Sequence record: PP695294.1
Strand: one strand, 5' to 3'
DNA: 64,000 bases
Below are positions 36,425-51,539 of this stretch, one piece after another. Position 1 is the stretch's first letter. Each line of letters begins with the position of its first letter. The notes under the pieces are model-generated. The model was not told the DNA's origin. It did no database searches and worked only from the letters and a program-made list of their open reading frames with translations. The position numbers were made by a program, and so were the translations under genes.

Positions 36425-36465
36425 CCTCTTCTCCTCCGGGAGAAGAGGCTTCTTATTTTTTTTAT
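36425..36465 (+). terminator. Intrinsic terminator
   Basis: CCTCTTCTCC-TCCG-GGAGAAGAGG plus T tract. Confidence 0.85.
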
Positions 36466-36513
36466 TACGTCTACGTAAATTACTGTGTAAGCACGACCCA
36501 AAAGGAATATAAA

Positions 36514-37152
36514 ATGCAATTACAATTTCGTCAACGGTCTGTACTACTACCGTTTAGCGCTATATTAGGTTCGTTTACCAAAATGCTGTCTGTGGATTTT
36601 ACTGCAGCTGAGAAAGAAGCGCTGTTATTGGCGGCAGTCGAAGAAGTATTGTGGGAGGTGTTTTACGTAGTGCCGTTTCGTAGCTGCTTAAACGCCCCGT
36701 ATGTTGAAGGGCAGTTTGTCAGCGCGCTTTCCGCTGCAATTACCAAACGTAAACTAAATGCCATGGCACACGTCAAAGAGATCACCGCGCAACGAGGACG
36801 GATATTCGCTACCGTCAGAAATGTGTTAATTAAAGAAGGGTTTCTTGCAGATGCGTTAGGTCCCGAAGTTCCTTGGGAACCGGGTCATCCGCCGCGTCAG
36901 TTTGACCACGGGTACAAGTTAAGTATAATTATGCCACGCGGTAAGCGTGACGTCTCATTGGGGAAATGGTTACAGATAAGTTGGGTTCGTCCTACTATCG
37001 ATTGGCAAGAAATGTCGGTCAATCGCTATCTGGAACACCTGGCAAAAACACCGGCACAGTTTCACCGTTCAACAATCCTGCCGCTACACATGCTGTTAAA
37101 ACCGTCCCTGTCATTGGCAGAAGCCAGATACCTGCTTAGTGGAGAGAAGTGA
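36514..37152 (+). CDS. Hypothetical protein
   Basis: 212 aa, SD AAGGA. Confidence 0.75.
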   Translation: MQLQFRQRSVLLPFSAILGSFTKMLSVDFTAAEKEALLLAAVEEVLWEVFYVVPFRSCLNAPYVEGQFVSALSAAITKRKLNAMAHVKEITAQRGRIFATVRNVLIKEGFLADALGPEVPWEPGHPPRQFDHGYKLSIIMPRGKRDVSLGKWLQISWVRPTIDWQEMSVNRYLEHLAKTPAQFHRSTILPLHMLLKPSLSLAEARYLLSGEK

Positions 37153-37634
37153 TGCTTGTTATTAATGTGGTCGAGGATAAGATTCCCGCGAATGTTTATC
37201 CTGAACTGGTTGAATGGGTGCGCGACTTAAACAGTATCCGTGAGGAGCCTATTAAACTCACGATGTTTGTTGAGGATGATATCGTGCGGGGAATCATGGC
37301 ATGGGAACCTGGCCATTTGGTCTATATGGTTGTGCCCGAAGAATCGCGCCGGGGCGGTGTCGGCAGATTTATGCTTAAGTATCTTCAGCAGAACTCCGAT
37401 CGTAAACACGTCAGCTGTCGTGTTCACCCGACCAACATTCCCGCGCTAGGATTCTTTCACCAACAAGGCTTCCAGATTGACCGATGGTATATTGCTGCTG
37501 ACGGCCAACGGTATTTTCGTATGACGAACTACAATGTTATTTCGTCACACACGCCACCGGAGGAAAAGCTTTTAACACATTACGCCGAAAGCGTTCCCAT
37601 TTTTCTTTCGATGGCAGAAGGTCATTTCGTCTAA
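37149..37634 (+). CDS. GNAT family acetyltransferase
   Basis: VPEESRRGGVGRFML (motif A), NIPALGFFHQQGF (motif B). Confidence 0.85.
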   Translation: MMLVINVVEDKIPANVYPELVEWVRDLNSIREEPIKLTMFVEDDIVRGIMAWEPGHLVYMVVPEESRRGGVGRFMLKYLQQNSDRKHVSCRVHPTNIPALGFFHQQGFQIDRWYIAADGQRYFRMTNYNVISSHTPPEEKLLTHYAESVPIFLSMAEGHFV

Positions 37635-37651
37635 ACGAGCGAGAGTGTATA

Positions 37652-38128
37652 ATGATACGTGTTGCTTACGAAACACGAGATACGGATGGAACCCGTATAA
37701 ACGTCATCCGCCGTGTGGAGCTTGTTCCTCAGCATGAACTGAATATTGCAGACAGTTCGCTTAGGGGCACTCCTGTTAAGATTCTGAATCTTACGAGACG
37801 TTCTTTTCATCACAGTAAGACATCACCAGCAATACGGTCCAGTAAAAGAAAAAGTTATGCCGATTTAAAACGTCGGTTGTCCCGGCATTTTCGTCGGAGT
37901 GCCTGGAAGGCTTTAGTTGAGGTTTTGGTCGACGAGCACCTTATCCAGAGGTTGGAGTGGGAAGAAGTTCTCAAGGAAGCGGGCTATCCAACAAAACCTT
38001 TCTCTTATCACTGGCATCACTTCAAAAAACAGTTCCATGATGCCTTACAGGTATCGCCAAACACCCGCAACATGATTCACCGTTTGGAGAAAATGGACTG
38101 GCTTCTACCCTATCTGGAAGAGGACTAG
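37652..38128 (+). CDS. Basic hypothetical protein
   Basis: 158 aa, Arg/Lys-rich middle. Confidence 0.7.
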   Translation: MIRVAYETRDTDGTRINVIRRVELVPQHELNIADSSLRGTPVKILNLTRRSFHHSKTSPAIRSSKRKSYADLKRRLSRHFRRSAWKALVEVLVDEHLIQRLEWEEVLKEAGYPTKPFSYHWHHFKKQFHDALQVSPNTRNMIHRLEKMDWLLPYLEED

Positions 38129-38130
38129 AT

Positions 38131-38520
38131 ATGATGCGTGCTGTATTAGCTGTGTTTATAGTCTGCGTTACTGCGCCAGTAAACGCCTTTACCATTCAGG
38201 ACTTCCCGCAGTATAAACCGATGTGGGAAACCGACGCACCTGTAAAATTTAGCGACAAAGATGAACCAGTCGTGACAGTGGTGAAGGGTGAGTTTGCCGT
38301 GGTCAACTACGGGCGTTCTGAACTGTGTCCGGGCGGTGGCTTTTATCTCGTTAACACAAAGCGCAAGACGTACCAGCCAATAGATGCCGGTACGTGTTCG
38401 CCGAAAGTTAAAGCGACAATTGTCCCGTCAGTACGAACACACCGCAGCGTTAATACCCACCAGTTAACTTTTTGGGTAGGTAAAGAAATTTCCGCGCGGT
38501 ATCCTTTGTACGATTATTAA
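38131..38520 (+). CDS. Exported protein (signal peptide, Cys pair)
   Basis: MMRAVLAVFIVCVTAPVNA signal-like; mature LCPGGG...GTC. Confidence 0.65.
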   Translation: MMRAVLAVFIVCVTAPVNAFTIQDFPQYKPMWETDAPVKFSDKDEPVVTVVKGEFAVVNYGRSELCPGGGFYLVNTKRKTYQPIDAGTCSPKVKATIVPSVRTHRSVNTHQLTFWVGKEISARYPLYDY

Positions 38521-38527
38521 ACACAGC

Positions 38528-38565
38528 GTATAGGGGCTTCGGCCCCTATACTGTTTATTATTTTC
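38528..38565 (+). terminator. Intrinsic terminator
   Basis: GTATAGGGGC-TTCG-GCCCCTATAC. Confidence 0.88.
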
Positions 38566-38611
38566 CTGTGAAGTATTATGACCCCCCTTAATCAAATACC
38601 AGGAGCGAGGC

Positions 38612-39229
38612 ATGTCTTTTGTTATTGACTTTAACCACCATCATAGTCAAACCTTGCTCGATTTAGTCAATGCTTTTAATGCTGAAACCGTTTATACGCC
38701 CCTGACCACAGAACGTATCCGTGTGGAGAGTTATGGTCCACCGGAACCGGACGGTCGTGTAAGTGCTTTGCTGACTAATAAGAGTAAGCCAGATGACTAT
38801 GTGGTTGTGCGTTACCGCAAATTGAGCTTAAATGATATAATCACATTGGGACCTGATCATCTCACGTGGTTTGATTTGTCGAAAGGTAAACCGGCCGATT
38901 TGCGCGTATGGTCTGAACCTGCAATGGCCAGTTTTGAATCGGCGTGTGCAGAACGTGGCATCGTTGTAAGTAAGGCGTGGGAAAACCCCGCGCAATGCCA
39001 CGTGGAGTATGACATCCCGACCGATCGATACGTCCTCGTCTATGAATGCGAATCATTTGTTTACGAATCACGCACACGCATTACGCTACCGTACCATATC
39101 GGCCAAGACTTAACCAAGACAACGCTGCCTGGTCTGGAATACGACCTGGCTGGTTTCTGGGGGCGTAAGCTGTTAGAAGAAGTGACTATCTCGAAGCTTA
39201 ACGGTTTTCGTTATCGTGAGTTTGTTTAA
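38612..39229 (+). CDS. Virion protein, paralog of 33786/58447
   Basis: IDFNHHHSQTLLDLVN...VRYRKLSL; TATGAC at 38577. Confidence 0.6.
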   Translation: MSFVIDFNHHHSQTLLDLVNAFNAETVYTPLTTERIRVESYGPPEPDGRVSALLTNKSKPDDYVVVRYRKLSLNDIITLGPDHLTWFDLSKGKPADLRVWSEPAMASFESACAERGIVVSKAWENPAQCHVEYDIPTDRYVLVYECESFVYESRTRITLPYHIGQDLTKTTLPGLEYDLAGFWGRKLLEEVTISKLNGFRYREFV

Positions 39230-39233
39230 GACA

Positions 39234-39275
39234 CTACCCTCGCCCGTTAGCGAGGGTAGGTATTTATTTTTTCTT
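39234..39275 (+). terminator. Intrinsic terminator
   Basis: CTACCCTCGC-6nt-GCGAGGGTAG plus T tract. Confidence 0.8.
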
Positions 39276-39308
39276 ACGAATCGTCCACTCCGTATAGGAG
39301 GTAAGTCC

Positions 39309-39908
39309 ATGAAAAAGATTTATAAAATTGCGGTAATCGGTTCTCGGAAGACTGATGAAGATACCATGTCTGAAATGTACATGCGATTGTTACGTGGGTT
39401 TAATGCGCTGCACGCCAAAGGCTACACGATTCATTTTTCTTCTGGCGGCTGCTGGTGTGGCCCAGACCAATTGCAATTCCGATTTGCCCGACAGTGGGCG
39501 AATACAATAGACCAGAACACTGGCAAGAAAGTGGTGTGGGATGACGAGTTCATCTGCTATTTACCCGATGAGAAAAAGCTTTGGCTCAAGAAACAGAACC
39601 CCAACGTAGAGTTCCGTGTAATCCCTCAGGACGACCGCTATCGTGAGATAGTAGGTAAGCTTCATCCCGCGCCAGAAAAGCTCCAGGAGTTCGCCTGGGC
39701 GCTTCACGGGCGTAATCTGAATATAATTATGGGCGATGATTTAGCAACGCCTGTAGACGCAGTCTATTACTCTGCGCCTTTAGATAAACAAGGTAATCCG
39801 ACCGGCGGTACTGCCATGGGCGTAAAATACGCTAAGCAGTGTGGTATTCCTTGTTACCACCATGCGCTTGAAGGACATCTGTGGCTTGAGAGCTTGTGCT
39901 TATTATGA
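39309..39908 (+). CDS. SLOG (DprA/Smf-like Rossmann) domain protein
   Basis: IAVIGSR, SSGGCWCGPD, GGTAMGVKYAKQCGIP; SD GGAGGT supports ATG 39309. Confidence 0.7.
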   Translation: MKKIYKIAVIGSRKTDEDTMSEMYMRLLRGFNALHAKGYTIHFSSGGCWCGPDQLQFRFARQWANTIDQNTGKKVVWDDEFICYLPDEKKLWLKKQNPNVEFRVIPQDDRYREIVGKLHPAPEKLQEFAWALHGRNLNIIMGDDLATPVDAVYYSAPLDKQGNPTGGTAMGVKYAKQCGIPCYHHALEGHLWLESLCLL

Positions 39909-39938
39909 CCACGTTGCCTTTAATCAGAGGTCGCTATT

Positions 39939-40211
39939 ATGCAAACAACCGGTTTAGCTCGTCGTTTGTGGGAAGCCTTCTTCCCCACGCCATCAAAACC
40001 CATTAAGAAGGTGACTAGCCTTCGCTTGTTCCCAGGCACCGAGGATGAGTTCTTCGATTACCTGGAACGGCATGGTTTTGATTCGAAAGTTGCACCGCAG
40101 GAAAATGACCCAATTCAGACGGTCTACACTACACCGGATACGGGTGAAATATTTGCTTTGTGTGTTCGCTGGCCACATCGTAATTATTACTACACTTTGA
40201 CGCAGATATAA
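39939..40211 (+). CDS. Small hypothetical protein
   Basis: 90 aa, SD GAGG. Confidence 0.7.
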   Translation: MQTTGLARRLWEAFFPTPSKPIKKVTSLRLFPGTEDEFFDYLERHGFDSKVAPQENDPIQTVYTTPDTGEIFALCVRWPHRNYYYTLTQI

Positions 40212-40221
40212 GGAGCAGGGG

Positions 40222-41355
40222 ATGTCGACGCTCGATTTAGATTTAGAAGTCCTGACTGACGACTACGATCGCCTGGTCGCACTCGAAGGTCTGGGAGTTA
40301 AGCCCGACTTCCCTGCGGTTTGCGCGATTCGTCAGCGTTGGTGCTTAACCGACGACGGTGAAGATATGTTGGTTGCTCGTGAATCGCGTGAAGCGATGGA
40401 GCGTGCTCAGTTTATGACTGATACCGACCCGCGGGCTGGCATCCATCGCGCAGCAGGGCGCATTACTGCGAAAGCTGTTAAAGGCGCTGGAAAGCTAGTG
40501 GGTGCTGGACTAGGTGCAACCGCAAAGGGCGCGGGTAAACTTTCGAAAAAGCTCGCATTACGCTTTTACGATTTCGCGGAAGCGCTAGCGAAAGAACAAG
40601 CCGACCGTTTGAAAGAAATAACTTCGAAAGCTGCTTTCATGGAACGTAAGCTCAATAAGCTTAAAACGCGAATGTCGCTGCTAGATGACCACAAAACACT
40701 CGCTGCAGTTGACGTTCACACGAGTAGCTGGACGTCTAAAATTTGCTTTGAAGATCGACCCGATTTTGAAGCGTGTGTTAAGTTTTCTAAACAAACAAAC
40801 GCGTACGAAGGCGTCGTGCAAAAGTACACGGTTTACACACGCACCGCTCTGAAGAAAAGCAAAGCATTCGAAGGGCCAGGCTTAAAACAAATCAGCAAGT
40901 CCACGAACTGGGCAGTTAAGCGTGCTGCTGGGTTGCTTGGCATCATCGATCCCTTTAAAAAGGTGGAAGCTTTTCCTGTCCCTGGAAATATCGTTGTGGT
41001 TGAGCACCATAGTGGTAAGGTCAGTTGGGCAATTGCGCGTGACGGTGAGTATGGTGAAACCATTAAATCGCTGGATATGCATCAGTGTGGGAAAGCAATA
41101 GAGGCTGTGGAAGCACTTATCAAATCTATTGCTGCACGTGGAACAAAGAACCGTGTTGTGGGCTACACCGGCATTTACGAAGAAGTGGAAGCGATGAAGT
41201 CCGAGCTTAAGAACCTAGAAGGGGATGAGCTGAAGGAGGCCACGTTACGTTACCGTAATGCAATGGCGATGGAAGACGCATTCACCACGGCGTTGGTACG
41301 CGTGGCGGAGGGTCTAATGGAGTGGACGAAGCAATCGCTGGCCGAGGTGAACTGA
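40222..41355 (+). CDS. Head protein, distant paralog of 4747/6102
   Basis: IRQRW...VARES propeptide motifs; AFPVPGN resembles VLALPGN. Confidence 0.65.
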   Translation: MSTLDLDLEVLTDDYDRLVALEGLGVKPDFPAVCAIRQRWCLTDDGEDMLVARESREAMERAQFMTDTDPRAGIHRAAGRITAKAVKGAGKLVGAGLGATAKGAGKLSKKLALRFYDFAEALAKEQADRLKEITSKAAFMERKLNKLKTRMSLLDDHKTLAAVDVHTSSWTSKICFEDRPDFEACVKFSKQTNAYEGVVQKYTVYTRTALKKSKAFEGPGLKQISKSTNWAVKRAAGLLGIIDPFKKVEAFPVPGNIVVVEHHSGKVSWAIARDGEYGETIKSLDMHQCGKAIEAVEALIKSIAARGTKNRVVGYTGIYEEVEAMKSELKNLEGDELKEATLRYRNAMAMEDAFTTALVRVAEGLMEWTKQSLAEVN

Positions 41356-41816
41356 TGAAGATTATTACCATAGTGGGGCCAGACACGGCTAACGGCAGGA
41401 AATATTCCACAGATATCCTCGCGCTTTATAACGAGCTGGACAAAAGCGAAATAGAAAGCTATCGAAAAGAGACGGGTATTAATGTCCGTTTTACGCCGGC
41501 TAAATCGTTAGCCGAGCGCTTCCGGGGTCGTTTACTGGCGGTCGTGGACGACGGTGTCTTGTATGGCTTTGCGCAATACCGCACGATGACTGAAGAGGGT
41601 GTGACGATGATGTCGGTATCCTCACTGGTCGTTAGCAGCAGCGCACGTGGTAAAGGTTACGGCACCGCGTTGATGGATGCGGTAAAGAAATCCGCAACGG
41701 AAAAAGGGTGTACAGTTGTTCACCTGTCCGTGAACGCCGGTAACGCTGCCGCGAAGTCGCTCTACGACAAAGCTGGCTTTAAGGTAGGTGCTTACCAGAT
41801 GTATTGGAGGGTGTGA
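41355..41816 (+). CDS. GNAT family acetyltransferase (tandem copy 1)
   Basis: VSSSARGKGYGTALM; NAAAKSLYDKAGF; start moved to ATG 41355. Confidence 0.92.
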   Translation: MKIITIVGPDTANGRKYSTDILALYNELDKSEIESYRKETGINVRFTPAKSLAERFRGRLLAVVDDGVLYGFAQYRTMTEEGVTMMSVSSLVVSSSARGKGYGTALMDAVKKSATEKGCTVVHLSVNAGNAAAKSLYDKAGFKVGAYQMYWRV

Positions 41817-42280
41817 TGAAAATCGTTTTTGTCACCAAGCCCAACTCCCCGTATGGAAAGAAATACTACGCGGATTTGTTAGGACTACACAACAAGTTAT
41901 ACGACGATCAGAAAATAAAACTCGCCGACTTAAACGGTCGTGAAGGGTTTAATCAAATCTCAAAACTGGAGGAGGTTTGGGGTGAAGGTACGCTGTGCGC
42001 TTGCGCCGTTGATGACCGTGGTGTGGCTGTTGGCTTCATCACCTTTGGCTACACCAAAAAGGGACAACGTTTCCTCTGGGTATATAACTTTTTTGTAGAT
42101 GAATCAGTTCGTTCACAAGGCGTTGGCCATGAACTGATCGAAGCCGTAGAAAACTACGGCAAATCAAAAGGCTGCGCATGGATGCAGCTTAACGTGCTCG
42201 GTAATAACGACCGTGCTATTGCGTTTTATGAACGTTTCGGATTCCGAACTGAATACCAGGATATGGTAAAGGAGCTTTAA
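41816..42280 (+). CDS. GNAT family acetyltransferase (tandem copy 2)
   Basis: VDESVRSQGVGHELI; NDRAIAFYERFGF; start moved to ATG 41816. Confidence 0.92.
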   Translation: MKIVFVTKPNSPYGKKYYADLLGLHNKLYDDQKIKLADLNGREGFNQISKLEEVWGEGTLCACAVDDRGVAVGFITFGYTKKGQRFLWVYNFFVDESVRSQGVGHELIEAVENYGKSKGCAWMQLNVLGNNDRAIAFYERFGFRTEYQDMVKEL

Positions 42281-42281
42281 C

Positions 42282-42890
42282 ATGGTGGCTGTCCGCAGCG
42301 TGCCACATCAGACTGGCTCGCGATATACTTTTTGTGTAAAGCGTTTTGGGGCAAGAAATCGCCCTGGTTGGAAGGTGGTACGTGCGATGGGACAGTTCTG
42401 GCAATTACCGCCCGGCACGTTAAAATATTTTTCAGTAGACAGAATAGCCCAGTTCTTAAATGCGGCTGACCCAAGTCAACGGTCCAGTTTTATGGCAGGG
42501 GTTGTTTGTCGTCCCGATGGGAAAACACGCGATGCAACCACACGTGGAATTTACTGGACAGGACAGAACGCGTTTCAGGTTGGCTTACCTTGCCTGAAGT
42601 GTGAAGTGACGCCGTTTAATGGCCCCTATGCCGATGCGTACTTCACCGGTATCTTTGTGTCGTTCCCAGACGACCCGTCTTTAAACTACTTTTTATCGGT
42701 AGACAAAGACGTCAGTATTGATACCTTCTACAAATACTTGTTGTTTTACAGCCGGTATATCCGCGTGACTCCTGTGCATGAAGATTGGTATTATAAAAAT
42801 CCCTTGAACTATGGGAGGGACAGGAGACTAGAAGGATGTTCTATCGAGAGCTTCAACTCTGTACCGCAGCGCTCCATGGCGCTAATGTGA
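42282..42890 (+). CDS. Hypothetical protein
   Basis: 202 aa, SD AAGGAG. Confidence 0.7.
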   Translation: MVAVRSVPHQTGSRYTFCVKRFGARNRPGWKVVRAMGQFWQLPPGTLKYFSVDRIAQFLNAADPSQRSSFMAGVVCRPDGKTRDATTRGIYWTGQNAFQVGLPCLKCEVTPFNGPYADAYFTGIFVSFPDDPSLNYFLSVDKDVSIDTFYKYLLFYSRYIRVTPVHEDWYYKNPLNYGRDRRLEGCSIESFNSVPQRSMALM

Positions 42891-43207
42891 GCAAGAACGG
42901 GGACCTGGAAGACGTCGCGCAAGCCTTACGGGCTGTGCCGGAGGTTGACCAGGTCGACATCGACGCTAAATATTTAGGCGACGGCGTAAAGCGTATTCAG
43001 TTGACCGTGCGAGCCAAACATGGCAGCTGCTCGTTACATTTCCGAGTCAGTGCGGATTATTTCCTGGTACTGCGCTCCACATTCAGTCACGATGGTCGGA
43101 CTCACCGGGTTCGGTGGATGCACGACATTACTAAATTTGGCTACCCGCTTGCAGAACAACGTAAAGTCGTTCATGACTTTATGTCTGCAGTCGTTGCGGG
43201 GTTTTAA
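42887..43207 (+). CDS. Small hypothetical, possibly virion, protein
   Basis: GTG 42887 overlaps upstream TGA; start uncertain (42836 possible). Confidence 0.6.
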   Translation: MSKNGDLEDVAQALRAVPEVDQVDIDAKYLGDGVKRIQLTVRAKHGSCSLHFRVSADYFLVLRSTFSHDGRTHRVRWMHDITKFGYPLAEQRKVVHDFMSAVVAGF

Positions 43208-43216
43208 GGGGAAACT

Positions 43217-43816
43217 GTGATGTCTGAGATGATTCTCGATTCGCTGTTTTTGATTACGGTTGCAAACATCAATAAAAACGGCAATCTTCCAGAATACGTA
43301 GACATAAGTCGTCATGGCTTTAAGCGTCGCTATCAAATCGGTAAGGTGTTAGAAATTGCCTGTTTAGTAACGAACATGCGTAGACCGGTGGACGGCTGTA
43401 GCGTTAAACACGCACAGATGATACTTGGACGTGCTATTTCAGAAGTACGTCGTAAGCGTCGTCGTGCACCGTATCGCTTTTATCCTAACTCTACCAAACA
43501 GGTGGTGGGCGAGGGTGAAGGTGTGGTTGATTTGCGCGAGGCCAGTTGTAATGTGGGTGGTATTGCACGTGACTGGTTAATGAGTATTATCAGTAAGCAT
43601 CCACGTACACCCACGCCGCAAGAAGGACAGGCGGTACTCGCGCTTATGCGTAAGACCCATTTGGTGATCACCGATACAGCGAATCAGGCAGCACGAATGC
43701 AGCACTATTTGGCGTGTCGTGGCTTTACCACGCTCGCAGTGCCTTCAGAATACGCAACTGATATTAAACTTCCGCCAGTCCCCGAGTGGTCTGAACCGAA
43801 AGTTGATCATCAGTGA
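43217..43816 (+). CDS. Basic hypothetical, possibly virion, protein
   Basis: 199 aa, RRKRRR patch. Confidence 0.65.
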   Translation: MMSEMILDSLFLITVANINKNGNLPEYVDISRHGFKRRYQIGKVLEIACLVTNMRRPVDGCSVKHAQMILGRAISEVRRKRRRAPYRFYPNSTKQVVGEGEGVVDLREASCNVGGIARDWLMSIISKHPRTPTPQEGQAVLALMRKTHLVITDTANQAARMQHYLACRGFTTLAVPSEYATDIKLPPVPEWSEPKVDHQ

Positions 43817-43821
43817 GTTAT

Positions 43822-43859
43822 ACCCACTCCTTCGGGAGTGGGTCGACTCTATTGTTTTT
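43822..43859 (+). terminator. Intrinsic terminator
   Basis: ACCCACTCC-TTCG-GGAGTGGGT. Confidence 0.75.
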
Positions 43860-43860
43860 C

Positions 43861-43881
43861 GGATAGATATTATTTTAGGGA
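43861..43881 (+). promoter_or_regulatory. Early promoter variant
   Basis: GGATAGATATTATTTTAGGGA. Confidence 0.6.
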
Positions 43882-43973
43882 GACGTACAAAATTTACGTT
43901 TCATCCTTAGCATATGCTAGAAGCCGTTGTGAGTCGGTTAAAACTCACCAACTTAAACTAAGAGAGAAATACC

Positions 43974-44720
43974 ATGACTGTTAATACTACGAAGAAAAAG
44001 TTCCTGTCCGTCCCCACTGCCTGTGGCGAATATCGTTATGTGTTTTTGTATAACGAAGAGATGATCGGCAAGGGCGGGATGCCGATTATGATAGAGCATA
44101 AGCTCATCAGCGCTAAAACAGGCGGTACCGTTGTACATGGCACGACTGAGTTCTTCGCAACTAACGCAACGCGGGAAACTGTTATTCGCGGGCTGCTGAA
44201 AGCACTGCGTGAAGTCTCAGCCAGGATGTTCTTTAAACACATCGCTCGTAAGCCTGAACTCATACCCGCGTGGAAAGAGTTCGACTTAGAAGCACTGCGT
44301 GAAGCTGCACCACGCTATGTCTTCATTGAAGAATGCATCAATGCGTATTTTAAAGACGTGATGCAAACCGAGCGATTGGTAAATAAAGCATCCGAAACAG
44401 GAAATCGTTTCTTCCGCAGTGTCAAATTTAAAGAAGACCTCCGGGCTAACTTCAACGATATTGAACTGCGTGTCACCCGCCGCATGACACTGCTGCGTCC
44501 CGAATCGGATACGCCGCAGGCCATGTTGTCTTATTCCTTGGCCCCTTCTGCGTTGTTTAACAAACGCGAAGGCTTCAGTGTAATGTCGCTCAATTTCACT
44601 AACAAATACGCGTTAGGGGAATGGCCGTCATTAAATGCATTCTTCAAAAGTCCGGGCATCAAGCCGGTCATCGAAGCATGGATTGAGCACACCTGGACAC
44701 CAGAAATGAAGAACCACTAG
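43974..44720 (+). CDS. Hypothetical early protein
   Basis: 248 aa single-gene cassette. Confidence 0.75.
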   Translation: MTVNTTKKKFLSVPTACGEYRYVFLYNEEMIGKGGMPIMIEHKLISAKTGGTVVHGTTEFFATNATRETVIRGLLKALREVSARMFFKHIARKPELIPAWKEFDLEALREAAPRYVFIEECINAYFKDVMQTERLVNKASETGNRFFRSVKFKEDLRANFNDIELRVTRRMTLLRPESDTPQAMLSYSLAPSALFNKREGFSVMSLNFTNKYALGEWPSLNAFFKSPGIKPVIEAWIEHTWTPEMKNH

Positions 44721-44745
44721 GCTATCGAGTAATAACATCTAATGT

Positions 44746-44786
44746 CAGGCATCCTTCGGGGTGCCTGTTTTATTTTTTTTTCTTTA
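44746..44786 (+). terminator. Intrinsic terminator
   Basis: CAGGCATCC-TTCG-GGGTGCCTG plus T tract. Confidence 0.88.
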
Positions 44787-44845
44787 CGTCTGGTCGCTAT
44801 ATTGTGACACCACTACAATTAATTAAACTTTTGGGGAAGAATAAA

Positions 44846-45469
44846 ATGTTAAACTCAGTGGCGCTGGATGGTCCAGATTTTTCTGGCAAATCAACACTCG
44901 CTAAAATGATTCAAGCGATGTTGCGCTCCGCTGGCGTTAATGCCATCATCGTCAATCACCCGACGAATACCACTGAAGCCGGTATTAGTGCACGCTCTCT
45001 GGTTATCCAGCACGCCTCTAGTGAACGTATTGCCAAAGCGATGTGTCTGGATTTCCAATATACAATGGACTTCGTTGTACCAGAGCACGATGTCGTTATT
45101 TTTGACCGTTTTTGTCAATCGACCATTGTCTACCAGGGCGTAGATGGTAAAGGGGAAGTTTTCCGTTCGCGGGTATTAGACCACATTAACGCACCAAAGC
45201 TTTACGTGGCAACCGATGTATCTTACGAAACCGCCACAGAACGCTTTAAGAAGCGCGTAGAAGCACAAGGTAAGCACTGGGATGATGAGGTACTGACAGC
45301 GAAGTATCTGCGCTCACAGACCGATTGGGACGCCTTACGCGACCATTACCGTTTTGCGTTCCACATCACTACAGACGGTGGTGATAAGTTTCCACTGATG
45401 CGAATTACAGCAGACGACGATATGGCGTTACAGGCCGCCCGTATCGTTGAACGTATTCTGGCAGGTTAG
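44846..45469 (+). CDS. tmk: Thymidylate (dTMP) kinase
   Basis: P-loop DGPDFSGKST, VIFDRF motif; ATG 44846 with SD GGGGA. Confidence 0.85.
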   Translation: MLNSVALDGPDFSGKSTLAKMIQAMLRSAGVNAIIVNHPTNTTEAGISARSLVIQHASSERIAKAMCLDFQYTMDFVVPEHDVVIFDRFCQSTIVYQGVDGKGEVFRSRVLDHINAPKLYVATDVSYETATERFKKRVEAQGKHWDDEVLTAKYLRSQTDWDALRDHYRFAFHITTDGGDKFPLMRITADDDMALQAARIVERILAG

Positions 45470-45475
45470 TTGTAC

Positions 45476-45512
45476 CCCTCTTACCTTCGGGTAAGAGGGC
45501 ATTGTCTTTTTT
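45476..45512 (+). terminator. Intrinsic terminator, same stem as 17872
   Basis: CCCTCTTACC-TTCG-GGTAAGAGGG. Confidence 0.85.
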
Positions 45513-45556
45513 ACAGATCAGAACAGTCCTATGCTTTTTGCTTCCAGTCCACTAAA

Positions 45557-45581
45557 TTTCAGATATATATTACCTTAGTGA
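45557..45581 (+). promoter_or_regulatory. Early promoter
   Basis: TTTCAGATATATATTACCTTAGTGA (23/25 to the 7432 copy). Confidence 0.75.
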
Positions 45582-45631
45582 GAGTTGTCGTTAAACTCTC
45601 TAATCGACTATTAATCTAAAGGAGTATTCTA

Positions 45632-45997
45632 ATGCGTTTTAAACATCAAACCGTTGTGTTGGCAAAGAAAGCATTTCTGGTTCGTCTCTCTTACATTATT
45701 ACCCGTGTCACTGCGAAGGATGTTACGCAGAAAGACATTGCATTGTTGGTAGGCTGCTCACCGTCACAAATCTCTGCGATTAAAAATGAACGCGAGAAAG
45801 CTGTGACTATCGAAACTCTGATGCGTGTTGCCGATACACTGCGCCTGAATTACGAAATCGTTTACCGTTCCATCAACGGCAAATGCCGCCATAGCTTCAA
45901 AATTGAATCCTGCATCGACTACATGAATAACTGTCCTATCCGGGTACGAGAAACAGGACTTAAAGTCATGGCACGTAAACCTTCTGCAGTGATGTAA
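45632..45997 (+). CDS. XRE/Cro-family helix-turn-helix protein
   Basis: TQKDIALLVGCSPSQISAIKNE...VTIETLMRVADTL. Confidence 0.85.
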   Translation: MRFKHQTVVLAKKAFLVRLSYIITRVTAKDVTQKDIALLVGCSPSQISAIKNEREKAVTIETLMRVADTLRLNYEIVYRSINGKCRHSFKIESCIDYMNNCPIRVRETGLKVMARKPSAVM

Positions 45998-46034
45998 ATT
46001 AAGGAGCATTTATGAACATAGATGAGGGCTTCGA

Positions 46035-46421
46035 ATGAACTGGTATGTGAGCGGTATCACCCGTCGTGTAATGACGGAAGAGGATGATCGATGTAAACAT
46101 CTTAAAGTGGGGTCTATAGCTCCACGTTATACGGCAGAGTGCGACCCATGGGGCCGCGAAACGTATTACATGTGCGAGAACTGCTGGGAAAAACTGCAGG
46201 CTGAAATTGCAGCTGAAGAAGTGGTCTGCGACGATTGCAAAGGTACCTTCCCGAAACGGGATACTGTTGAGTGGAAATGGCACGACTTTGACCCCAGTCA
46301 AGGGGATAAAGAACTTTGTATCTGTAATAACTGCGTGTCTTTACCGACACATTTAAACCGTGTAGAGAATGACCGTCGGGCATTTGAACACGACTTTCCA
46401 GAAGCAGCTTTCTGGGATTAA
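46035..46421 (+). CDS. Cys-rich, probable zinc-finger protein
   Basis: CENC, CDDC, CNNC motifs. Confidence 0.7.
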   Translation: MNWYVSGITRRVMTEEDDRCKHLKVGSIAPRYTAECDPWGRETYYMCENCWEKLQAEIAAEEVVCDDCKGTFPKRDTVEWKWHDFDPSQGDKELCICNNCVSLPTHLNRVENDRRAFEHDFPEAAFWD

Positions 46422-46447
46422 CTAGTGTAAACCTTAAGGAGTATACC

Positions 46448-47104
46448 ATGGCGAAGGCCCCTAAAACTGTAGCAAAAGATTCAATGGCAAGCAGCGCGGT
46501 TAAATCCACAAAAACGCGCACCACTGAATCCACGCGTACATCTAGCATTCCGAAGCCGGATGTGATTGTACCGATCAGTGAGCGTCTGAAAACGATTCAC
46601 ATCGAACGTGAATTTCCGATTGACCTTGGTCAGGAAATCGTTTCGGTTAACCTTGGTAGCGACGTACGCTTTACCATCTATAAAGGCGCGCATCTGAACA
46701 ACATGGTGCTAACCCGCGGTGATGAAGTTATCGGCCTGTCTCGTTACGACACGCAAATCGAAAACATCTATCCGGTGTTTGCAGTAGCGATGTTGCGTTT
46801 GTTCATGCAGGATAAAGCCGACCTTTGTGGCCAGCTTGCGGGTATGGCCGATCGTGTTGGCCACATTCTGCCGACGCTGGTGAAACTTTACCCGGTTACG
46901 ATTGATGTGGCGTTCACTACGGTAGACAACAACCACGGCTATATCGTGCTGACCAAAGACGGTAAAGTTATCGCTGGCAATCTGACTGATAACGAAGTGC
47001 AGAAACATATGGACAAATTTGCGTTCATGGTGAATCGCCTAGCACACGTCAGTGTCAAACATTCCGAAACTTGGACGACGCTTGTCTCCAAACCGGAACT
47101 GTAA
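46448..47104 (+). CDS. Hypothetical protein with K/S/T-rich N-terminal tail
   Basis: 218 aa, SD TAAGGAG, strong codon bias. Confidence 0.8.
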   Translation: MAKAPKTVAKDSMASSAVKSTKTRTTESTRTSSIPKPDVIVPISERLKTIHIEREFPIDLGQEIVSVNLGSDVRFTIYKGAHLNNMVLTRGDEVIGLSRYDTQIENIYPVFAVAMLRLFMQDKADLCGQLAGMADRVGHILPTLVKLYPVTIDVAFTTVDNNHGYIVLTKDGKVIAGNLTDNEVQKHMDKFAFMVNRLAHVSVKHSETWTTLVSKPEL

Positions 47105-47107
47105 TCA

Positions 47108-47145
47108 TTAAGGGGTCTTCGGACCCCTTAATTTTTTGTCTTTTT
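47108..47145 (+). terminator. Intrinsic terminator
   Basis: TTAAGGGGTC-TTCG-GACCCCTTAA plus T tract. Confidence 0.9.
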
Positions 47146-47193
47146 ACGCATTATCCTCATGATGTGACAGCAATACCTTTTGAGGGCATTACA

Positions 47194-48195
47194 ATGAAAA
47201 CTGTGGCTAAATTGTTTCGCACCAGCATCCGCACTGCCGAGTTCCGAAATAACGTCGGTAGCGATACTGTACGAGCACGCCGCCTAAAAGAGTTTCTAAA
47301 GGACGAGACTTATTCTGTTTACGTGGTGAAGAATAAAGAAACCTGGGAGGGTTATTTAGTGGCCACCTATCGACACGGTGACCCTACGCTAACCTGTCAC
47401 TATTTTGAGGAGTTTGTACCTGGGGCATTCGATAAAGTTGGTTTGGCTCTTGTGCTCGACCATACCGGATTCGAATATATGTCGTGCCCAGCACCTACTG
47501 ACGATGTTGAACAAAAACTGGTCGAAAAAGGGTTTGTTCTTTCAGATATCGTTTGGGCATGTCATTCTAAACTGTTTGACAAAGTAATCACCGCATCAGA
47601 AATCAAGATTATTTCTGGTGATGCATACGCAGAACTTACCAAGGAAGATAAAGACGTTATCCTGAATTTGATTAGCGGTGCAATTTGCGAAGAGCTAGAA
47701 TACGATATGCGTGGCTACTATACACACATTGGTCCGTTAGCAGAAACAGTAATAGCAAGAATTCAGCACGCTAATGTGGAGACTGCAATTTGGCGAGACG
47801 GTCATGATATCGTCGGTATTGCCCAGATGCGCTTGGTTACACCAGGCGTCGTTGAACTTTCTGGTTTAACCGTTGCGCCCACGCACCGTAAACGTGGCAT
47901 TGGCCGCCGGCTAATGGGCGCGCTATTCGATTTCGCACAACGTCATTCCGACCAAGTCTATATTGAAACAGCTGCTGATAATAATCCAGCAAATCACCTG
48001 TACGGTAACATCTTACGTTGCAAGCAGGTACTGCGTACACTAACGTTGAAACGCGATCCTGAACTTATTAGCTGGAAACGGGTGAATGGGAACCGCGCCG
48101 ATCGAGTGCTGAAAGAAGAACCTAGCATTCCGGTGGAGACTACAACCAGGCTGACTATCAGTGATATGTTTCAATCTGGCATGAGAGGATGTTAA
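47194..48195 (+). CDS. Tandem-GNAT acetyltransferase (degenerate N domain, intact C domain)
   Basis: LTVAPTHRKRGIGRRLM and NNPANHLY in C domain; LVEKGFVL in N domain; ATG 47194 with SD GAGG. Confidence 0.85.
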   Translation: MKTVAKLFRTSIRTAEFRNNVGSDTVRARRLKEFLKDETYSVYVVKNKETWEGYLVATYRHGDPTLTCHYFEEFVPGAFDKVGLALVLDHTGFEYMSCPAPTDDVEQKLVEKGFVLSDIVWACHSKLFDKVITASEIKIISGDAYAELTKEDKDVILNLISGAICEELEYDMRGYYTHIGPLAETVIARIQHANVETAIWRDGHDIVGIAQMRLVTPGVVELSGLTVAPTHRKRGIGRRLMGALFDFAQRHSDQVYIETAADNNPANHLYGNILRCKQVLRTLTLKRDPELISWKRVNGNRADRVLKEEPSIPVETTTRLTISDMFQSGMRGC

Positions 48196-48198
48196 CGG

Positions 48199-49017
48199 GT
48201 GATAAAACCAATTTTAAAATGGATGGGTGGTAAGAGTCGTGTACTGCCCGAGCTGCTACAGGTGTTTCCGGATGCTGAGTATTTCGTTGAACCTTTTGTG
48301 GGCGCAGGGTCAGTGTTTTTAAACACTAAATACCCGAACTATATTCTCGGCGACACGAACCCGGACTTAATCGAGTTACTGACCATGGCGCGCGATCGTC
48401 CGGAAGCGCTGATTCTGGAAGCAAAGGCGCTCTTTGCAAATGGGACGGACCGCGGTCTCTACATGGAACGACGCGAGGGATTTAACAGCGAAACAACCAC
48501 GGGGAAACCTAATCTCCAGCGCGCCGCGATGTTCCTGTATCTTACACGTCATGGTTACAATGGTTTGTGCAGATACAATCAGTCGGGTGGGTTTAACGTG
48601 CCCTATGGTCAACACCCGAACGGTGTCTATTTCCCTGAAGAGGAAATTCTGGCGTGGGCAAAACGTTGTTCGGAAACCAACGTCGAGCTGCTCTGCGCGG
48701 ACTTCCGCGACATCCTAAATAAGTGCCCATCTAACGCTGTGATATACGCCGACCCGCCCTACATCCCACTTTCGGATACGGCTAAACACGCGCAGTATCA
48801 CAGCAAAGAATTTTCACAAGCTGACCACCGCGAGTTAGCGAAACTTTTAAAACAACAAGCTGCCGATGGCAATAAGGTCGTTCTGTCAAACGCAGATACG
48901 TTACTCACACGTGACATCTACTACGGTTTTACCTGGCGTGAAGTTCAGGTGGGCCGATATATGTCCGCCGATGCGAATAAACGTAAAGCGGTGACAGAGC
49001 TAATCGGCACCTTATAA
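48199..49017 (+). CDS. dam: DNA adenine methyltransferase (Dam family)
   Basis: LKWMGGKSR, VEPFVGAGSVF, YADPPY. Confidence 0.95.
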   Translation: MIKPILKWMGGKSRVLPELLQVFPDAEYFVEPFVGAGSVFLNTKYPNYILGDTNPDLIELLTMARDRPEALILEAKALFANGTDRGLYMERREGFNSETTTGKPNLQRAAMFLYLTRHGYNGLCRYNQSGGFNVPYGQHPNGVYFPEEEILAWAKRCSETNVELLCADFRDILNKCPSNAVIYADPPYIPLSDTAKHAQYHSKEFSQADHRELAKLLKQQAADGNKVVLSNADTLLTRDIYYGFTWREVQVGRYMSADANKRKAVTELIGTL

Positions 49018-49026
49018 GGTACCAAC

Positions 49027-49830
49027 ATGCAACTATTTAATCTATACGGTATGGACAAAAATGACCTGACCGTAGAGTTTAGTGGTCGATTGACCACCTT
49101 GGGGCAACTCCGTGAACGGATTCAAGATTTGCGACCCGTCGCAGACCAAGAAGACGATCATTGGTTAGTGTTGAGCAATAGCGGTCGTGCGCAAATGTAT
49201 TTTCGTGGATGTCGTTCAGGTATTGTTTACTACATCTACGAGTTGCACGTGCTTTCCGAGCCCCTGTTCCACGAGTGGAAGCGTTTAACGCGACTCCTGG
49301 AAGTGCAGATGCTTGATATCACCTGTTTTCCGCATGACACCGAACATGCGGCATTGTACCAATGTCTGGGGTTCGAAGCTGTAACGAAGCGTGTGGAGAT
49401 TACTGTCAGTCCGAAATACGGTTTTACGTCAGACCCATCGGTTGTCCCGTTGGAGACATTGTCATTAGAACAAACCCAAGATGTTTGCTATCTAATGCGA
49501 CCTACGCTAAAAGACGCAGGAACGCGTGAGATGTTGGGTGAATTAGCAAATGGTTTTGTCTCTGCGTTCGTGGGGCTGCACGGCCAGAAACCGTTTTCAT
49601 TAATGCTTTATAAGGAGTTCCCGAAGAGCATCATTACTGAGCAATTCTGCTGCCAAACTTTTGACCCGGTTGCTTACTCGGTAGAGTTTCTAAAACACTA
49701 CCACGCCATTTTGCATTTGGCGGGACAGAAAGGTAAGAAGGTCAACATGGGCGTTGCGATAGAGCACGAGTTTCCTTCTATCGAAGGGTTAGAGTATCGT
49801 GTAATCACGCATCACTACACCCTTGCGTAA
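49027..49830 (+). CDS. Degenerate tandem GNAT-fold protein
   Basis: AALYQCLGFEAV resembles motif B at mid-protein; no clear motif A. Confidence 0.45.
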   Translation: MQLFNLYGMDKNDLTVEFSGRLTTLGQLRERIQDLRPVADQEDDHWLVLSNSGRAQMYFRGCRSGIVYYIYELHVLSEPLFHEWKRLTRLLEVQMLDITCFPHDTEHAALYQCLGFEAVTKRVEITVSPKYGFTSDPSVVPLETLSLEQTQDVCYLMRPTLKDAGTREMLGELANGFVSAFVGLHGQKPFSLMLYKEFPKSIITEQFCCQTFDPVAYSVEFLKHYHAILHLAGQKGKKVNMGVAIEHEFPSIEGLEYRVITHHYTLA

Positions 49831-49839
49831 GGAGAGAAT

Positions 49840-50652
49840 ATGCTGAGAGTTATCGAACGCACGGAGAGGATTCTGGACCGAACGTGGTTGGAAGACCGTA
49901 AAGCGTTATCGTTGTTAAATGATATCGATCCTTCCACGTTACAAGATGAACGTCGTCTTTACTACCGAATCTTTGAAGTTTTCAGTCGGGACACAGTTGC
50001 GCCCGACGCGATCGTGCTCTGTCTGGACCACGGATACATGTTAGAAGTTATCAATATGGTTCGTGCTTTAGACGCCCAGTTAACCTCGCTTGCGGATGCT
50101 TTACTCCGCTCAGCGGGGTGTAACTACGCGATGCATTTTACTCGTTCGGAAGGGGACGAATATTCGCGCATGGGCTTTTGTTGCGAAACGATAAACTACC
50201 GCAAAATTAATACATCGGTGCCTAGCCACGATGAGGATTTCTGTGGGGATGTCAGTTCGTTGTTCGATAGTAAGAAAGCGTTCTTGGATTGGGTTAGGAT
50301 GCTTTACGGTACAAGCTCTATCTACTCAACGCTTGTCATGGGCGGGAGGATGATGTCATGGCGGAGCAGCGATAGTTACAAACTGACAGTGCTCTCACAT
50401 CGTGGACGACGCTGGGTTATTGGTGGATGGTTTACCGCAGAAGGGGTGGTTACTCTAACTCGAGAGGAGTTCGGACTGTTGATGCACTGTATCCAGTCTG
50501 AATTACCGGTGGGGGATGAATTAGTTTACACTTACCACCAATATACTGGGGGACCAGCCGCAATGTGGTTATTAGAAAATGGTTGGCTACCCGAAAGTTA
50601 TGTGTACGGACGTGCCCTGAAAACTACTAATGGAGAAAATAATGCAAATTAA
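49840..50652 (+). CDS. Degenerate tandem GNAT-fold protein
   Basis: EYSRMGF mid-protein and AMWLLENGW near end, both motif-B-like; no clear motif A. Confidence 0.35.
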   Translation: MLRVIERTERILDRTWLEDRKALSLLNDIDPSTLQDERRLYYRIFEVFSRDTVAPDAIVLCLDHGYMLEVINMVRALDAQLTSLADALLRSAGCNYAMHFTRSEGDEYSRMGFCCETINYRKINTSVPSHDEDFCGDVSSLFDSKKAFLDWVRMLYGTSSIYSTLVMGGRMMSWRSSDSYKLTVLSHRGRRWVIGGWFTAEGVVTLTREEFGLLMHCIQSELPVGDELVYTYHQYTGGPAAMWLLENGWLPESYVYGRALKTTNGENNAN

Positions 50653-50920
50653 TCGTACAGTGTCGAAGTCTAAAGAAGTCGTTTACAACGTTGAGGACGG
50701 CGACGTAATGCAGTTCCGTGCCGTTATTGACGAACAGCACGTACTCCAAGTCGTTTATTCGAAAGAAGAAATGACTCGCGCACATAGCCGCGTGTTGGAA
50801 AAGCTCGTCGCGAAAGCCAAACAACGCGACGGCATTAAATCCTACAACGTTATGTACGGTTATCAGTTACGTGAGGTGGAAGGGGAGCTGTTAATCACCC
50901 CTGTTCCGGTAACGGCGTAA
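50642..50920 (+). CDS. Small hypothetical protein
   Basis: 92 aa from ATG 50642, SD GGAG. Confidence 0.75.
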   Translation: MQINRTVSKSKEVVYNVEDGDVMQFRAVIDEQHVLQVVYSKEEMTRAHSRVLEKLVAKAKQRDGIKSYNVMYGYQLREVEGELLITPVPVTA

Positions 50921-50960
50921 TTCGCCATTGTATGACCCTTAAACACCGTTGAGGTTAACT

Positions 50961-51443
50961 ATGGATATGATCGAATTAGGTCAGCTCCCTCAGCACGATT
51001 TCGATTTAGGCGTGCGTCATGAGGAAGGGGCCGACGCGAACACACTGATGGCCCGCTACTACGAGCTACTGACCGGTCAACCGTTGGACGATGAACACAT
51101 CAACCGTTTTGAAAAACTGTTGGCACAACTCATCACCTCTAACGCAGAACGCATTGGCATGTTGAACGAAATGAACTTTGCCGATGTAGAGCCGTCTGAC
51201 GCTCAGAAGATTCTTATCGATGGTCCTGTGCCAAGCGATGAGGTACAAGACCTTCTGGCAGGTATCCGTGCAGGCTTCGATGAAGCTGCTGAGAAATACG
51301 CGGAAGAGCTGGCAGATGTCGATTTGGCTGCGCCGGTTGACCCGAATCCATCTGCAGAGGAGACTGCAGCTGCGAAATTGAAACTCGCACGCTTTATCTG
51401 TGCTGCTGTCTTGACAGACGACCGTGAAGAAAACCAACTGTAA
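50961..51443 (+). CDS. Acidic protein, probable late/head protein
   Basis: TATGAC at 50931, SD GAGG, AEE/AAE sites, own terminator at 51450. Confidence 0.6.
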   Translation: MDMIELGQLPQHDFDLGVRHEEGADANTLMARYYELLTGQPLDDEHINRFEKLLAQLITSNAERIGMLNEMNFADVEPSDAQKILIDGPVPSDEVQDLLAGIRAGFDEAAEKYAEELADVDLAAPVDPNPSAEETAAAKLKLARFICAAVLTDDREENQL

Positions 51444-51539
51444 GGCCCGCCTCCTTGCCCACGGGTGAGGAGGTCCCTTTTTATTTACATCAGTCCACTA
51501 ACTTATGTGAAACAACCCACGTAATGAGGAATTAAGAGA

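Follow-up and report, generated by a model that had tools for sequence, protein, structure and literature searches.

GCN5-related N-acetyltransferases (GNATs) have already been noted as numerous in jumbo phages (Iyer et al. 2021, PMC7824862), and catalysis in the tandem GNATs characterized to date is confined to the C-terminal lobe (PMC10936415). Here we analyzed a stretch of 64,000 nucleotides from sequence record PP695294.1 (the window), in which six GNAT-type genes lie between positions 37149 and 50652. This interval matches PP695294.1 at 100% identity and the same coordinates, and SPN3US and its relatives (genus Seoulvirus) at 96-97% identity; the window thus represents the leftmost 64 kb of the genome of Salmonella jumbo phage 1252 (243,229 bp), a nucleus-forming phage and close relative of SPN3US, whose gene numbers are used below. 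The GNAT richness of jumbo phages is known, and canonical GNATs are annotated in relatives of this phage. New are the recognition, from predicted structures, that two families labeled 'hypothetical' (gp106 and gp107) are likely paralogues of gp104 and degenerate members of the tandem GNATs, and the connection of the virion presence of gp95 with the position of its gene behind that of an internal head protein and with its duplication in phage 1252.

On balance, we favor a reading in which the six genes belong to three distinct GNAT modules, each conserved among SPN3US-like jumbo phages, and not to one system. The first module would consist of a lone, ordinary small GNAT (37152) that is not a virion protein. 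The second would couple the internal head protein gene, through overlapping stop and start codons, to a small GNAT (41816) whose product is packed in the capsid; phage 1252 has an additional, diverged copy of this gene (41355), which forms an inserted cassette. The third would be an operon of three paralogous tandem GNATs of the MshD/VipF kind around a Dam methylase gene. Gene anatomy, Pfam domains, predicted folds, conservation, and the virion presence of an identical SPN3US protein are the directly demonstrated elements from which this reading is built.

Canonical GNAT domains

All six open reading frames lie on the + strand and correspond to annotated coding sequences of PP695294.1, each labeled 'hypothetical protein'; the sole difference from GenBank concerns the first gene, annotated from an ATG at 37152 and listed among the open reading frames from a GTG at 37149. 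Their SPN3US counterparts are gp88 (37152), gp95 (41816), gp104 (47194), gp106 (49027), and gp107 (49840); 41355-41816 has no counterpart in SPN3US.

In a GNAT superfamily profile test with Pfam Acetyltransf_1 (gathering cut-off, 20.7 bits), four canonical domains scored above the cut-off (Table 1), and 49027, 49840, and the N-terminal half of 47194 did not in any family member. The one match in 47194 spans residues 194-270 of the annotated 333-residue protein (235-311 of the scanned 374-residue open reading frame). Motif A (Q/R-x-x-G-x-G/A), which lies in the beta4-alpha3 loop and binds the pyrophosphate of acetyl-coenzyme A (acetyl-CoA), occurs exactly once in each of 37152, 41355, 41816, and 47194 (at residues 66, 98, 99, and 232), against a background of 0.09 per 100 residues across the open reading frames of the window; it reads R-R-G-G-V-G in 37152 and R-K-R-G-I-G in 47194. 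In PHROGs, the products of 37152, 41355, and 41816 are all called 'acetyltransferase'; that of 37152 matches phrog_7861 at 1.3e-78, and its start codon overlaps the stop of the upstream gene.

When the whole public record was scanned, one further Pfam GNAT was found in the 243-kb genome, and four of the five canonical GNATs therefore lie within 11 kb, an arrangement to which our rough arithmetic assigns a chance of about 2e-3. The fifth (PP695294.1:124845-125333) is annotated as hypothetical, comprises 162 residues, and scores just over the Pfam cut-off, at 21.3 bits. A toxin-antitoxin reading of the AtaT/TacT type was rejected: NCBIfam and PADLOC gave no match to these toxins, and the neighboring genes are conserved phage genes, not antitoxins.

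The original prediction of six GNAT-type genes in 13.5 kb is thus borne out, by GenBank coding sequences that match the open reading frames, by Pfam for four genes, and by structure models for two. Its three single-domain GNATs with an intact motif (37152, 41355, and 41816) each exceed the Pfam cut-off and carry one motif. Of the up to nine domains it had counted, eight are directly supported; the ninth is the N-terminal half of 47194, a protein it had called a clear tandem, and here the C-terminal half holds by Pfam score and motif and the N-terminal half is indicated indirectly, by model alignment. Its lower-confidence view of 49027 and 49840 as degenerate tandem GNATs agrees with the models described next: the Foldseek comparison it had proposed as a check found a GNAT fold in both predicted structures, which match tandem-GNAT structures and lack the motif in both lobes.

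Predicted degenerate tandem GNATs beside a Dam methyltransferase gene

The products of 49027 and 49840 match nothing in Pfam, NCBIfam, or PADLOC, and profile searches of PDB sequences returned nothing relevant. The members of their families (18 and 15, respectively), scanned singly against Pfam, matched no GNAT model even at E<=10; BLASTP of 49027 against 49840, and of each against 47194, was negative or under significance; and whole-protein HHalign comparisons of gp106 and gp107, with one another and with gp104, gave probabilities <10%. When 1.8 billion cluster representatives were searched exhaustively by HMMER with the gp106 profile, just 11 proteins were recovered, all from the gp106 family; the gp107 family is equally small. 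In PHROGs both fall only in families of unknown function (phrog_9941 and phrog_13677), which are found solely in SPN3US-like phages. Language-model look-alikes of the two came from clusters named as GNATs (scores of 0.94-0.95) and were taken as leads, not used as evidence.

The assignment is carried by predicted structures, to which we applied the definition of the GNAT fold as a mixed sheet in the order beta1-alpha1-alpha2-beta2-3-4-alpha3-beta5-alpha4-beta6. The AlphaFold2 (AF2) model of gp106, built from an 18-row alignment (pLDDT 90.2, pTM 0.78), contains two consecutive beta-alpha-alpha-beta-beta-beta-alpha-beta(-alpha)-beta units, at residues 1-127 and 139-266. With this model, Foldseek retrieved 199 PDB chains at E<=1e-3, headed by tandem GNATs aligned over almost the full chain; the top matches were VipF (6wqb, E 3e-10), MAB_4324, 3tt2, Orf14/CBG (2wpw), GlmA (5kf1, TM-score 0.52), MshD (1ozp), and Eis, and among Swiss-Prot entries of AFDB they included SpsD, many MshD entries, WecD, and YitH. 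The gp107 model (15-row alignment, pLDDT 82.5, pTM 0.57) gave 20 PDB matches at E<=1e-3, all of them GNATs and led by Orf14 (2wpw, 1.4e-6) and VipF (2.3e-6), and aligned with VipF across residues 1-254 in VIA-align (Z 8.0-8.5). Its lobes singly match single-domain GNATs, including RimI, YhhK, and GCN5, at Z 6-6.8 (VIA), with root-mean-square deviations of 3.3-3.5 A for residues 1-117 (against GCN5, PCAF, and RibT) and 4.0-4.4 A for residues 131-257 (against YhhK and RimI); its TM-scores are low (0.25-0.35) because the packing of the two lobes is uncertain. A second, independent predictor also folded both chains confidently (pLDDT 80 for gp106 and 76 for gp107).

Motif A was absent by motif scan from both lobes of gp106, both lobes of gp107, and the N-lobe of gp104; in the gp106 C-lobe, the aligned position reads D-P-V-A-Y-S (HHalign). 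Because these five lobes have no motif, as many as five of the nine domains are probably not acetyl-CoA-dependent catalysts. The models predict two lobes in 49027 and in 49840, and two are deduced for 47194, with the C-lobe motif in 47194 only; gp104 thus fits the C-lobe-only rule of characterized tandem GNATs, and gp106 and gp107 go beyond it, their signature being missing in both lobes. In the reading that we favor, gp104 would probably be an active N-acetyltransferase, with a division of labor between its lobes resembling that in MshD and VipF. The proteins gp106 and gp107 would have kept the double-GNAT fold and lost the motif, and they most likely would be non-catalytic binding proteins derived from gp104, or else would use a donor other than acetyl-CoA.

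The relationship among the three proteins emerges from the models and from faint profile signals. The N-terminal 160 residues of gp104 had no Pfam or PDB sequence match in any of eight orthologues. When the gp106 model was searched against BFVD, it matched a 317-residue 'Putative GCN5-related N-acetyltransferase' of Erwinia phage Kwan (E 9e-15, TM-score 0.63, 278 columns) and a 314-residue entry (TM-score 0.60), with gp107-type proteins, including a 256-residue phiEaH2 protein, next in line. We take the 317- and 314-residue entries to be orthologues of gp104 (47194), which makes them the best non-orthologous matches of the gp106 model. In HHalign, the gp107 N-lobe aligned weakly but collinearly with the gp104 N-lobe (P 7e-4), as did the merged N-lobes of gp106 and gp107 (P 2e-3, 79 columns); merged C-lobes aligned with canonical GNATs at a probability of 57% (P 1e-4, 100 columns), a moderate signal obtained from merged half-domain profiles only. 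Because the model matches to gp104-type entries and the weak collinear profile matches agree, we conclude that gp104, gp106, and gp107 are likely old paralogues with one common double-GNAT architecture.

Other proteins near these genes deserve mention. A further family of about 250 residues is encoded right after the gp106 and gp107 genes in Machinavirus and Wellingtonvirus, represented by Caitlin gp119, Huxley gp119, and Wellington gp135 (L007:15595-16359, L011:3764-4525, and L008:14841-15578 in our locus numbering). Its members share 25-33% mutual identity, have no Pfam match, and show a very distant, faint N-terminal likeness to gp107; Huxley and Wellington seem to carry this family in place of a true gp107. 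The gp106 model also matches uncharacterized proteins of 213-215 residues from Erwinia phages Kwan, Huxley, and others in BFVD (E 1e-7 to 9e-6). The window gene at 42282-42890 (gp96 type), directly 3' of the small GNAT gene, has a Caitlin orthologue of 215 residues, and if the 213-215-residue entries correspond to it, its product may be another GNAT-like fold.

The setting of these genes invites a different explanation, in which the gp104-Dam-gp106-gp107 operon is a nucleic-acid modification module whose motif-less tandem GNATs use another donor, such as an aminoacyl-tRNA, to modify DNA adenines or tRNA alongside Dam. The operon is tight, with gaps of 3-9 nt, and the Dam-gp106-gp107 core is kept where gp104 is lost. 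Chemistry of this kind is known from Mom, a GNAT-fold enzyme that moves glycine from Gly-tRNA to the N6 of adenine in double-stranded DNA (PMC13219725), and the models do match aminoacyl-tRNA-dependent tandem GNATs, namely Sbb17 (E 3e-7), MprF DUF2156, FemX, L/F-transferase, and Ate1. However, CoA-dependent tandem GNATs (VipF, Orf14, and MshD) outrank the Fem-type enzymes for both models; none of the six proteins has a sequence match to Mom in Pfam or PDB, no Mom or Fem family match was found in Pfam, NCBIfam, or PDB, and Mom is not in the best 50 structural matches of the gp106 and gp107 models. Moreover, we found no report of non-methyl adenine modification in SPN3US-like DNA, and the adjacency to Dam may be mere synteny. 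We therefore see little chance that this explanation is correct. A bolder version, to which we give the least credence of all, would make the Dam-gp106-gp107 core, joined by gp104 and in some phages by a further paralogue, a new nucleic-acid or protein acylation module whose double-GNAT proteins, no longer binding acetyl-CoA, would employ another activated donor, such as an aminoacyl-tRNA, in Mom-like chemistry of independent origin within a jumbo-phage lineage.

A head-packaged GNAT and its extra copy

The second module centers on the internal head protein gene, whose stop codon overlaps the start codon of the GNAT gene behind it. Thomas et al. (2016, PMC5105663, Table S4) provided a mass spectrometry protein list of purified SPN3US particles, in which gp94, gp95, gp97, and gp109 were found in virions, including tailless particles; their detection in tailless particles identifies them as head proteins. 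For gp95 (17.6 kDa), 17, 12, 11, and 6 spectra were recorded, again including tailless particles, and gp88, gp104, Dam, gp106, and gp107 are absent from the virion list (PMC5105663). These proteins go unmentioned in the main texts of three SPN3US papers, and PMC10052503 likewise gave no match in its supplement; cleavage of gp94 by the prohead protease is possible (PMC10052503).

As the product of 41816 is identical to head-packaged SPN3US gp95, it would be available at DNA entry. Delivery into the cell, like the catalytic status and every substrate of these proteins, is a step that we infer: packed into the capsid, the enzyme probably accompanies the DNA and internal proteins into the cell, like T4 Alt, and would then, before phage gene expression begins, acetylate either a host protein or a small molecule such as a small amine.

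A substrate has been sought experimentally for this protein. Li et al. (2023, PMC9992855) expressed SPN3US YP_009153389 in Escherichia coli lacking speG and detected no N-acetylspermidine; in the same assay, candidate enzymes of Erwinia phages Caitlin and phiEaH2 showed active spermidine acetylation. YP_009153389 is gp95, 100% identical to the product of 41816. In Caitlin and phiEaH2, the GNAT encoded behind the internal head protein is 53% and 72% identical, respectively, to the product of 41816. We take these two proteins, the presumed positional orthologues, to be the enzymes that were active. Polyamines are accordingly the only substrate class with experimental support, obtained in the presumed Erwinia-phage orthologues. 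NCBIfam scores for spermidine acetyltransferases were far under the cut-offs (41816 against PaiA NF053587, 23.6 bits, cut-off 250).

The 41355 product is 34% identical to that of 41816 and has an N-terminal pattern in common with it. This extra copy occurs in four phage records at >=99% identity, with phage 1252, EC001, and Lh1B among those listed; the remaining one is probably JN03, whose record spans the entire stretch in a single piece. It constitutes a 461-nt cassette inserted exactly between the gp94 stop and the gp95 start, and since both of its junctions read TGATGAA(A/G)AT, the overlapping stop/start arrangement is kept. Given that it occupies the same translationally coupled position as 41816, we expect, by analogy, that the 41355 product may be packaged in the head too.

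An early-acting enzyme could also serve to subvert the host, and some or all of the GNATs might counter defenses or take over the host by acetylating a given host protein, an alternative we judge to be unlikely. There are two precedents: the anti-CRISPR protein AcrVA5 acetylates Cas12a, and in LUZ19-like phages Rac acetylates the alpha subunit of RNA polymerase. Jumbo-phage GNATs have been predicted to resemble Rac or the ribosomal-protein GNAT RimI (PMC7824862), RimI is the best NCBIfam likeness of 41355, 41816, and gp104, though far under its cut-off, and the gp107 C-lobe matches the AcrVA5 fold at Z 5.5; a head-packaged enzyme, moreover, would act ahead of any phage gene expression. Yet searches with NCBIfam gave zero equivalog-level matches to protein acetyltransferases and those with PADLOC models zero significant matches, and a phage that encodes RNA polymerases of its own and builds a nucleus-like shell has less need of takeover (PMC9365700).

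Hairpin-bounded gene units, conservation, and the case for separate modules

Strong hairpins followed by T-runs on the + strand, at 36425, 38528, 39234, 44746, 45476, 47107, and 51449, divide the region into six units (A-F; Table 1), and the six GNAT genes are spread over three of these terminator-bounded units (A, C, and F). Contig coverage in four RNA libraries, made from a phage with about 97% identity to this one, supports the boundary between units E and F: depth falls 50-100 fold at the 47107 hairpin, contigs begin at 47069-47083, and single contigs run from 47069 unbroken across gp104-gp107.

Table 1. Positions of the GNAT-type genes, their neighbors, and the hairpin-bounded units in the window
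Feature	Position	Strand	Basis or content
Unit A	36514-38520	+	gp87, GNAT gp88, gp89, gp90
GNAT, single-domain, SPN3US gp88 type	37152-37634	+	Pfam Acetyltransf_1 25.9 bits (weak); unit A
Unit B	38612-39229	+	gp91
Unit C	39309-44720	+	DprA-like protein, gp93, internal head protein gp94, two small GNATs, gp96-gp99
Internal head protein, SPN3US gp94 type	40222-41355	+	phrog_2497 'internal head protein' 4.2e-88; weak phiKZ_IP Pfam match
GNAT, single-domain, extra paralogue	41355-41816	+	Pfam 63.7 bits
GNAT, single-domain, gp95	41816-42280	+	Pfam 65.0 bits; 100% identity to SPN3US gp95
Unit D	44846-45469	+	thymidylate kinase
Unit E	45632-47104	+	helix-turn-helix (HTH) protein, gp102, gp103
Hairpin terminator, unit E / unit F boundary	47107-47132	+	11-bp stem, then T-run
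Unit F	47194-51443	+	gp104, Dam, gp106, gp107, gp108, gp109; gaps 3, 9, 9, -11, 40 nt
Tandem GNAT, gp104 type	47194-48195	+	Pfam 53.7 bits, C-terminal half; C-lobe canonical, N-lobe degenerate
Dam-type N6-adenine DNA methyltransferase	48199-49017	+	Pfam MethyltransfD12 1.7e-53
Tandem GNAT-fold protein (predicted), SPN3US gp106 type	49027-49830	+	AF2 model and Foldseek; motif in neither lobe
Tandem GNAT-fold protein (predicted), SPN3US gp107 type	49840-50652	+	AF2 model and Foldseek; motif in neither lobe
gp108 and gp109 types, unit F	50642-51443	+	gp109 = SPN3US head protein; terminator 51449-51474

Seoulvirus, Machinavirus, and Wellingtonvirus all share the order GNAT ... internal head protein-GNAT ... 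tandem GNAT-Dam-gp106-gp107; genes in units A, C, and F are arranged alike in SPAsTU and pEa_SNUABM_29 (Seoulvirus), in Caitlin, Huxley, and SNUABM_8/9 (Machinavirus), and in Wellington. The Erskinevirus phages phiEaH2 and Asesino (L006 and L009) have no gp104-type gene before Dam and retain Dam-gp106-gp107, the rest of the order being conserved. Homologues of gp104 were found in 59 phage records, all within the SPN3US-like supergroup.

These patterns bear on the original proposal of a dedicated acylation program across the stages of infection. The idea of stages has some support, in that the gp95-identical product of 41816 is head-packaged and the counterparts of 37152, 47194, 49027, and 49840 are off the virion list; that of one dedicated program is not supported, given the three terminator-bounded units, the five lobes without the motif, and the spermidine-negative behavior of gp95. 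In its full form, the proposal would have all six proteins, with up to nine domains, as active acyltransferases that act in one coordinated program on host or phage targets at successive infection stages. The density of six GNAT-fold genes in 13.5 kb, with one more in the other 230 kb, the presence of one product in virions and not of the others, and the conservation of the whole set across four genera would agree with such coordination, but beyond the points just named, Erskinevirus loses gp104 and retains the others, the extra copy at 41355 occurs in four phage records only, and no common regulator or shared target was found. We thus regard a single coordinated program as improbable and prefer three separate modules.

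Several observations weigh against our own reading. Virion mass spectrometry establishes presence in the head, not ejection into the cell, and the protein identical to that of 41816 was negative for spermidine acetylation (PMC9992855). Every sequence-level test of kinship between GNATs and gp106 or gp107 fell under significance, and the folds of both were predicted from shallow alignments (18 and 15 rows) with TM-scores to solved structures of only 0.25-0.52. A missing canonical motif does not prove lost CoA binding. RNA depth over gp104-gp107 is low, near the neighboring baseline, and weak transcription is indistinguishable there from DNA carry-over.

Further features of expression were apparent in the same region. 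The unit encoding the HTH protein, gp102, and gp103 (45645-47100) has a contig word depth of 4e4-2e5, 50-100x that of both neighboring units, and appears to be a very highly expressed small operon. Across 50640-51499, depth rises from about 50700, by ~3-4 fold in one run and 2-3 fold in another, and is flat in the other two of the four runs; the rise covers the end of gp108 and the head-protein gene gp109 and is possibly the sign of an internal promoter used at a later stage. A sigma-70 promoter scan found fewer sites than in shuffles, a deficit to be expected since the phage has its own RNA polymerases. Each strong + strand hairpin terminator in 36425-51490 has its T-run followed by TTAC(G/A), e.g. 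at 36459, 39268, 44778, 45505, and 51479, and the spacer 45470-45631 contains an exact TATATTAC, the phiKZ early-promoter consensus. The pattern TTTTNTTTACR, with one mismatch allowed, occurs 23 times in the window against 13.7 expected, and the hairpin, T-run, and TTAC(G/A) sites may be combined terminator-promoter units.

Among the relatives, the gp88-type gene of phiEaH2 is annotated shorter (369 nt). The gp99-type gene (43974-44720) is single here and has two or three weakly similar neighbors in Caitlin (gp107-gp109, L007:7094-9443) and Wellington (gp130 and gp131, L008:10576-12043), which suggests a locally expanding family. In several SPFM records (LR535901-LR535917), the same genes match as 3-8 short pieces and the whole stretch as 40. 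Sister records are collinear, and the fragmentation suggests poor assembly or numerous frameshifts.

Comparison with known systems

The proposed fold gives a structural identity to phrog_9941 and phrog_13677, which in the databases and records checked are listed elsewhere only as hypothetical, and the putative paralogous set of gp104, gp106, and gp107 would join a tandem GNAT subfamily with a handful of characterized members (PMC10936415); a literature search on tandem GNAT and bacteriophage found no paper. Tying a supplementary mass spectrometry table to sequence identifies the small GNAT encoded right after the internal head protein as head-packaged, and the gp95-type GNAT becomes a candidate enzyme delivered with DNA in a phage with working amber-mutant genetics.

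The closest structural relatives of gp106 and gp107 are MshD (1OZP), VipF (6WQB/7WX5), Orf14/CBG (2WPW), and GlmA (5KF1), which like them have two GNAT lobes in a chain of ~270-330 residues and supply the best full-length matches of both models. With these enzymes gp104 shares a cofactor motif in the C-terminal lobe only; gp106 and gp107 differ from them in having the motif in neither lobe and no detectable sequence similarity, with moderate TM-scores (0.25-0.52). A further difference is that these proteins are encoded by phages, form sets of two or three paralogues next to a Dam gene, and are restricted to one phage clade. Other members of the fold dispense with acetyl-CoA: Mu Mom, which acts on DNA adenine, and the Fem-type transferases retain a GNAT fold without its use (PMC13219725), and enzymes of the Fem and Sbb17 types are found among the structural matches of gp106 and gp107, ranked under CoA-dependent tandem GNATs and with no sequence match. 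Chimallin, the shell protein of the phage nucleus, of which SPN3US has a diverged homologue, carries a catalytically dead, C-terminal GNAT-like domain (PMC9365700), but its architecture of an alpha/beta N-domain, one GNAT-like domain, and long tails differs from that of gp106 and gp107. Kinship of gp106 with chimallin was considered and set aside, chimallin not being in the named best 50 BFVD matches, several rows of which are nameless.

For the head-packaged GNAT, the comparison is with enzymes of two kinds. The spermidine acetyltransferase candidates of Erwinia phages are the presumed positional orthologues of 41816, and unlike them the SPN3US protein identical to its product made no N-acetylspermidine. 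T4 Alt, as is well established, is an enzyme packed in the head with internal proteins and available at DNA entry (PMC7824862), as we propose for 41816; Alt, however, is an ADP-ribosyltransferase and not a GNAT, and gp95 is known from heads only, its injection being our proposal.

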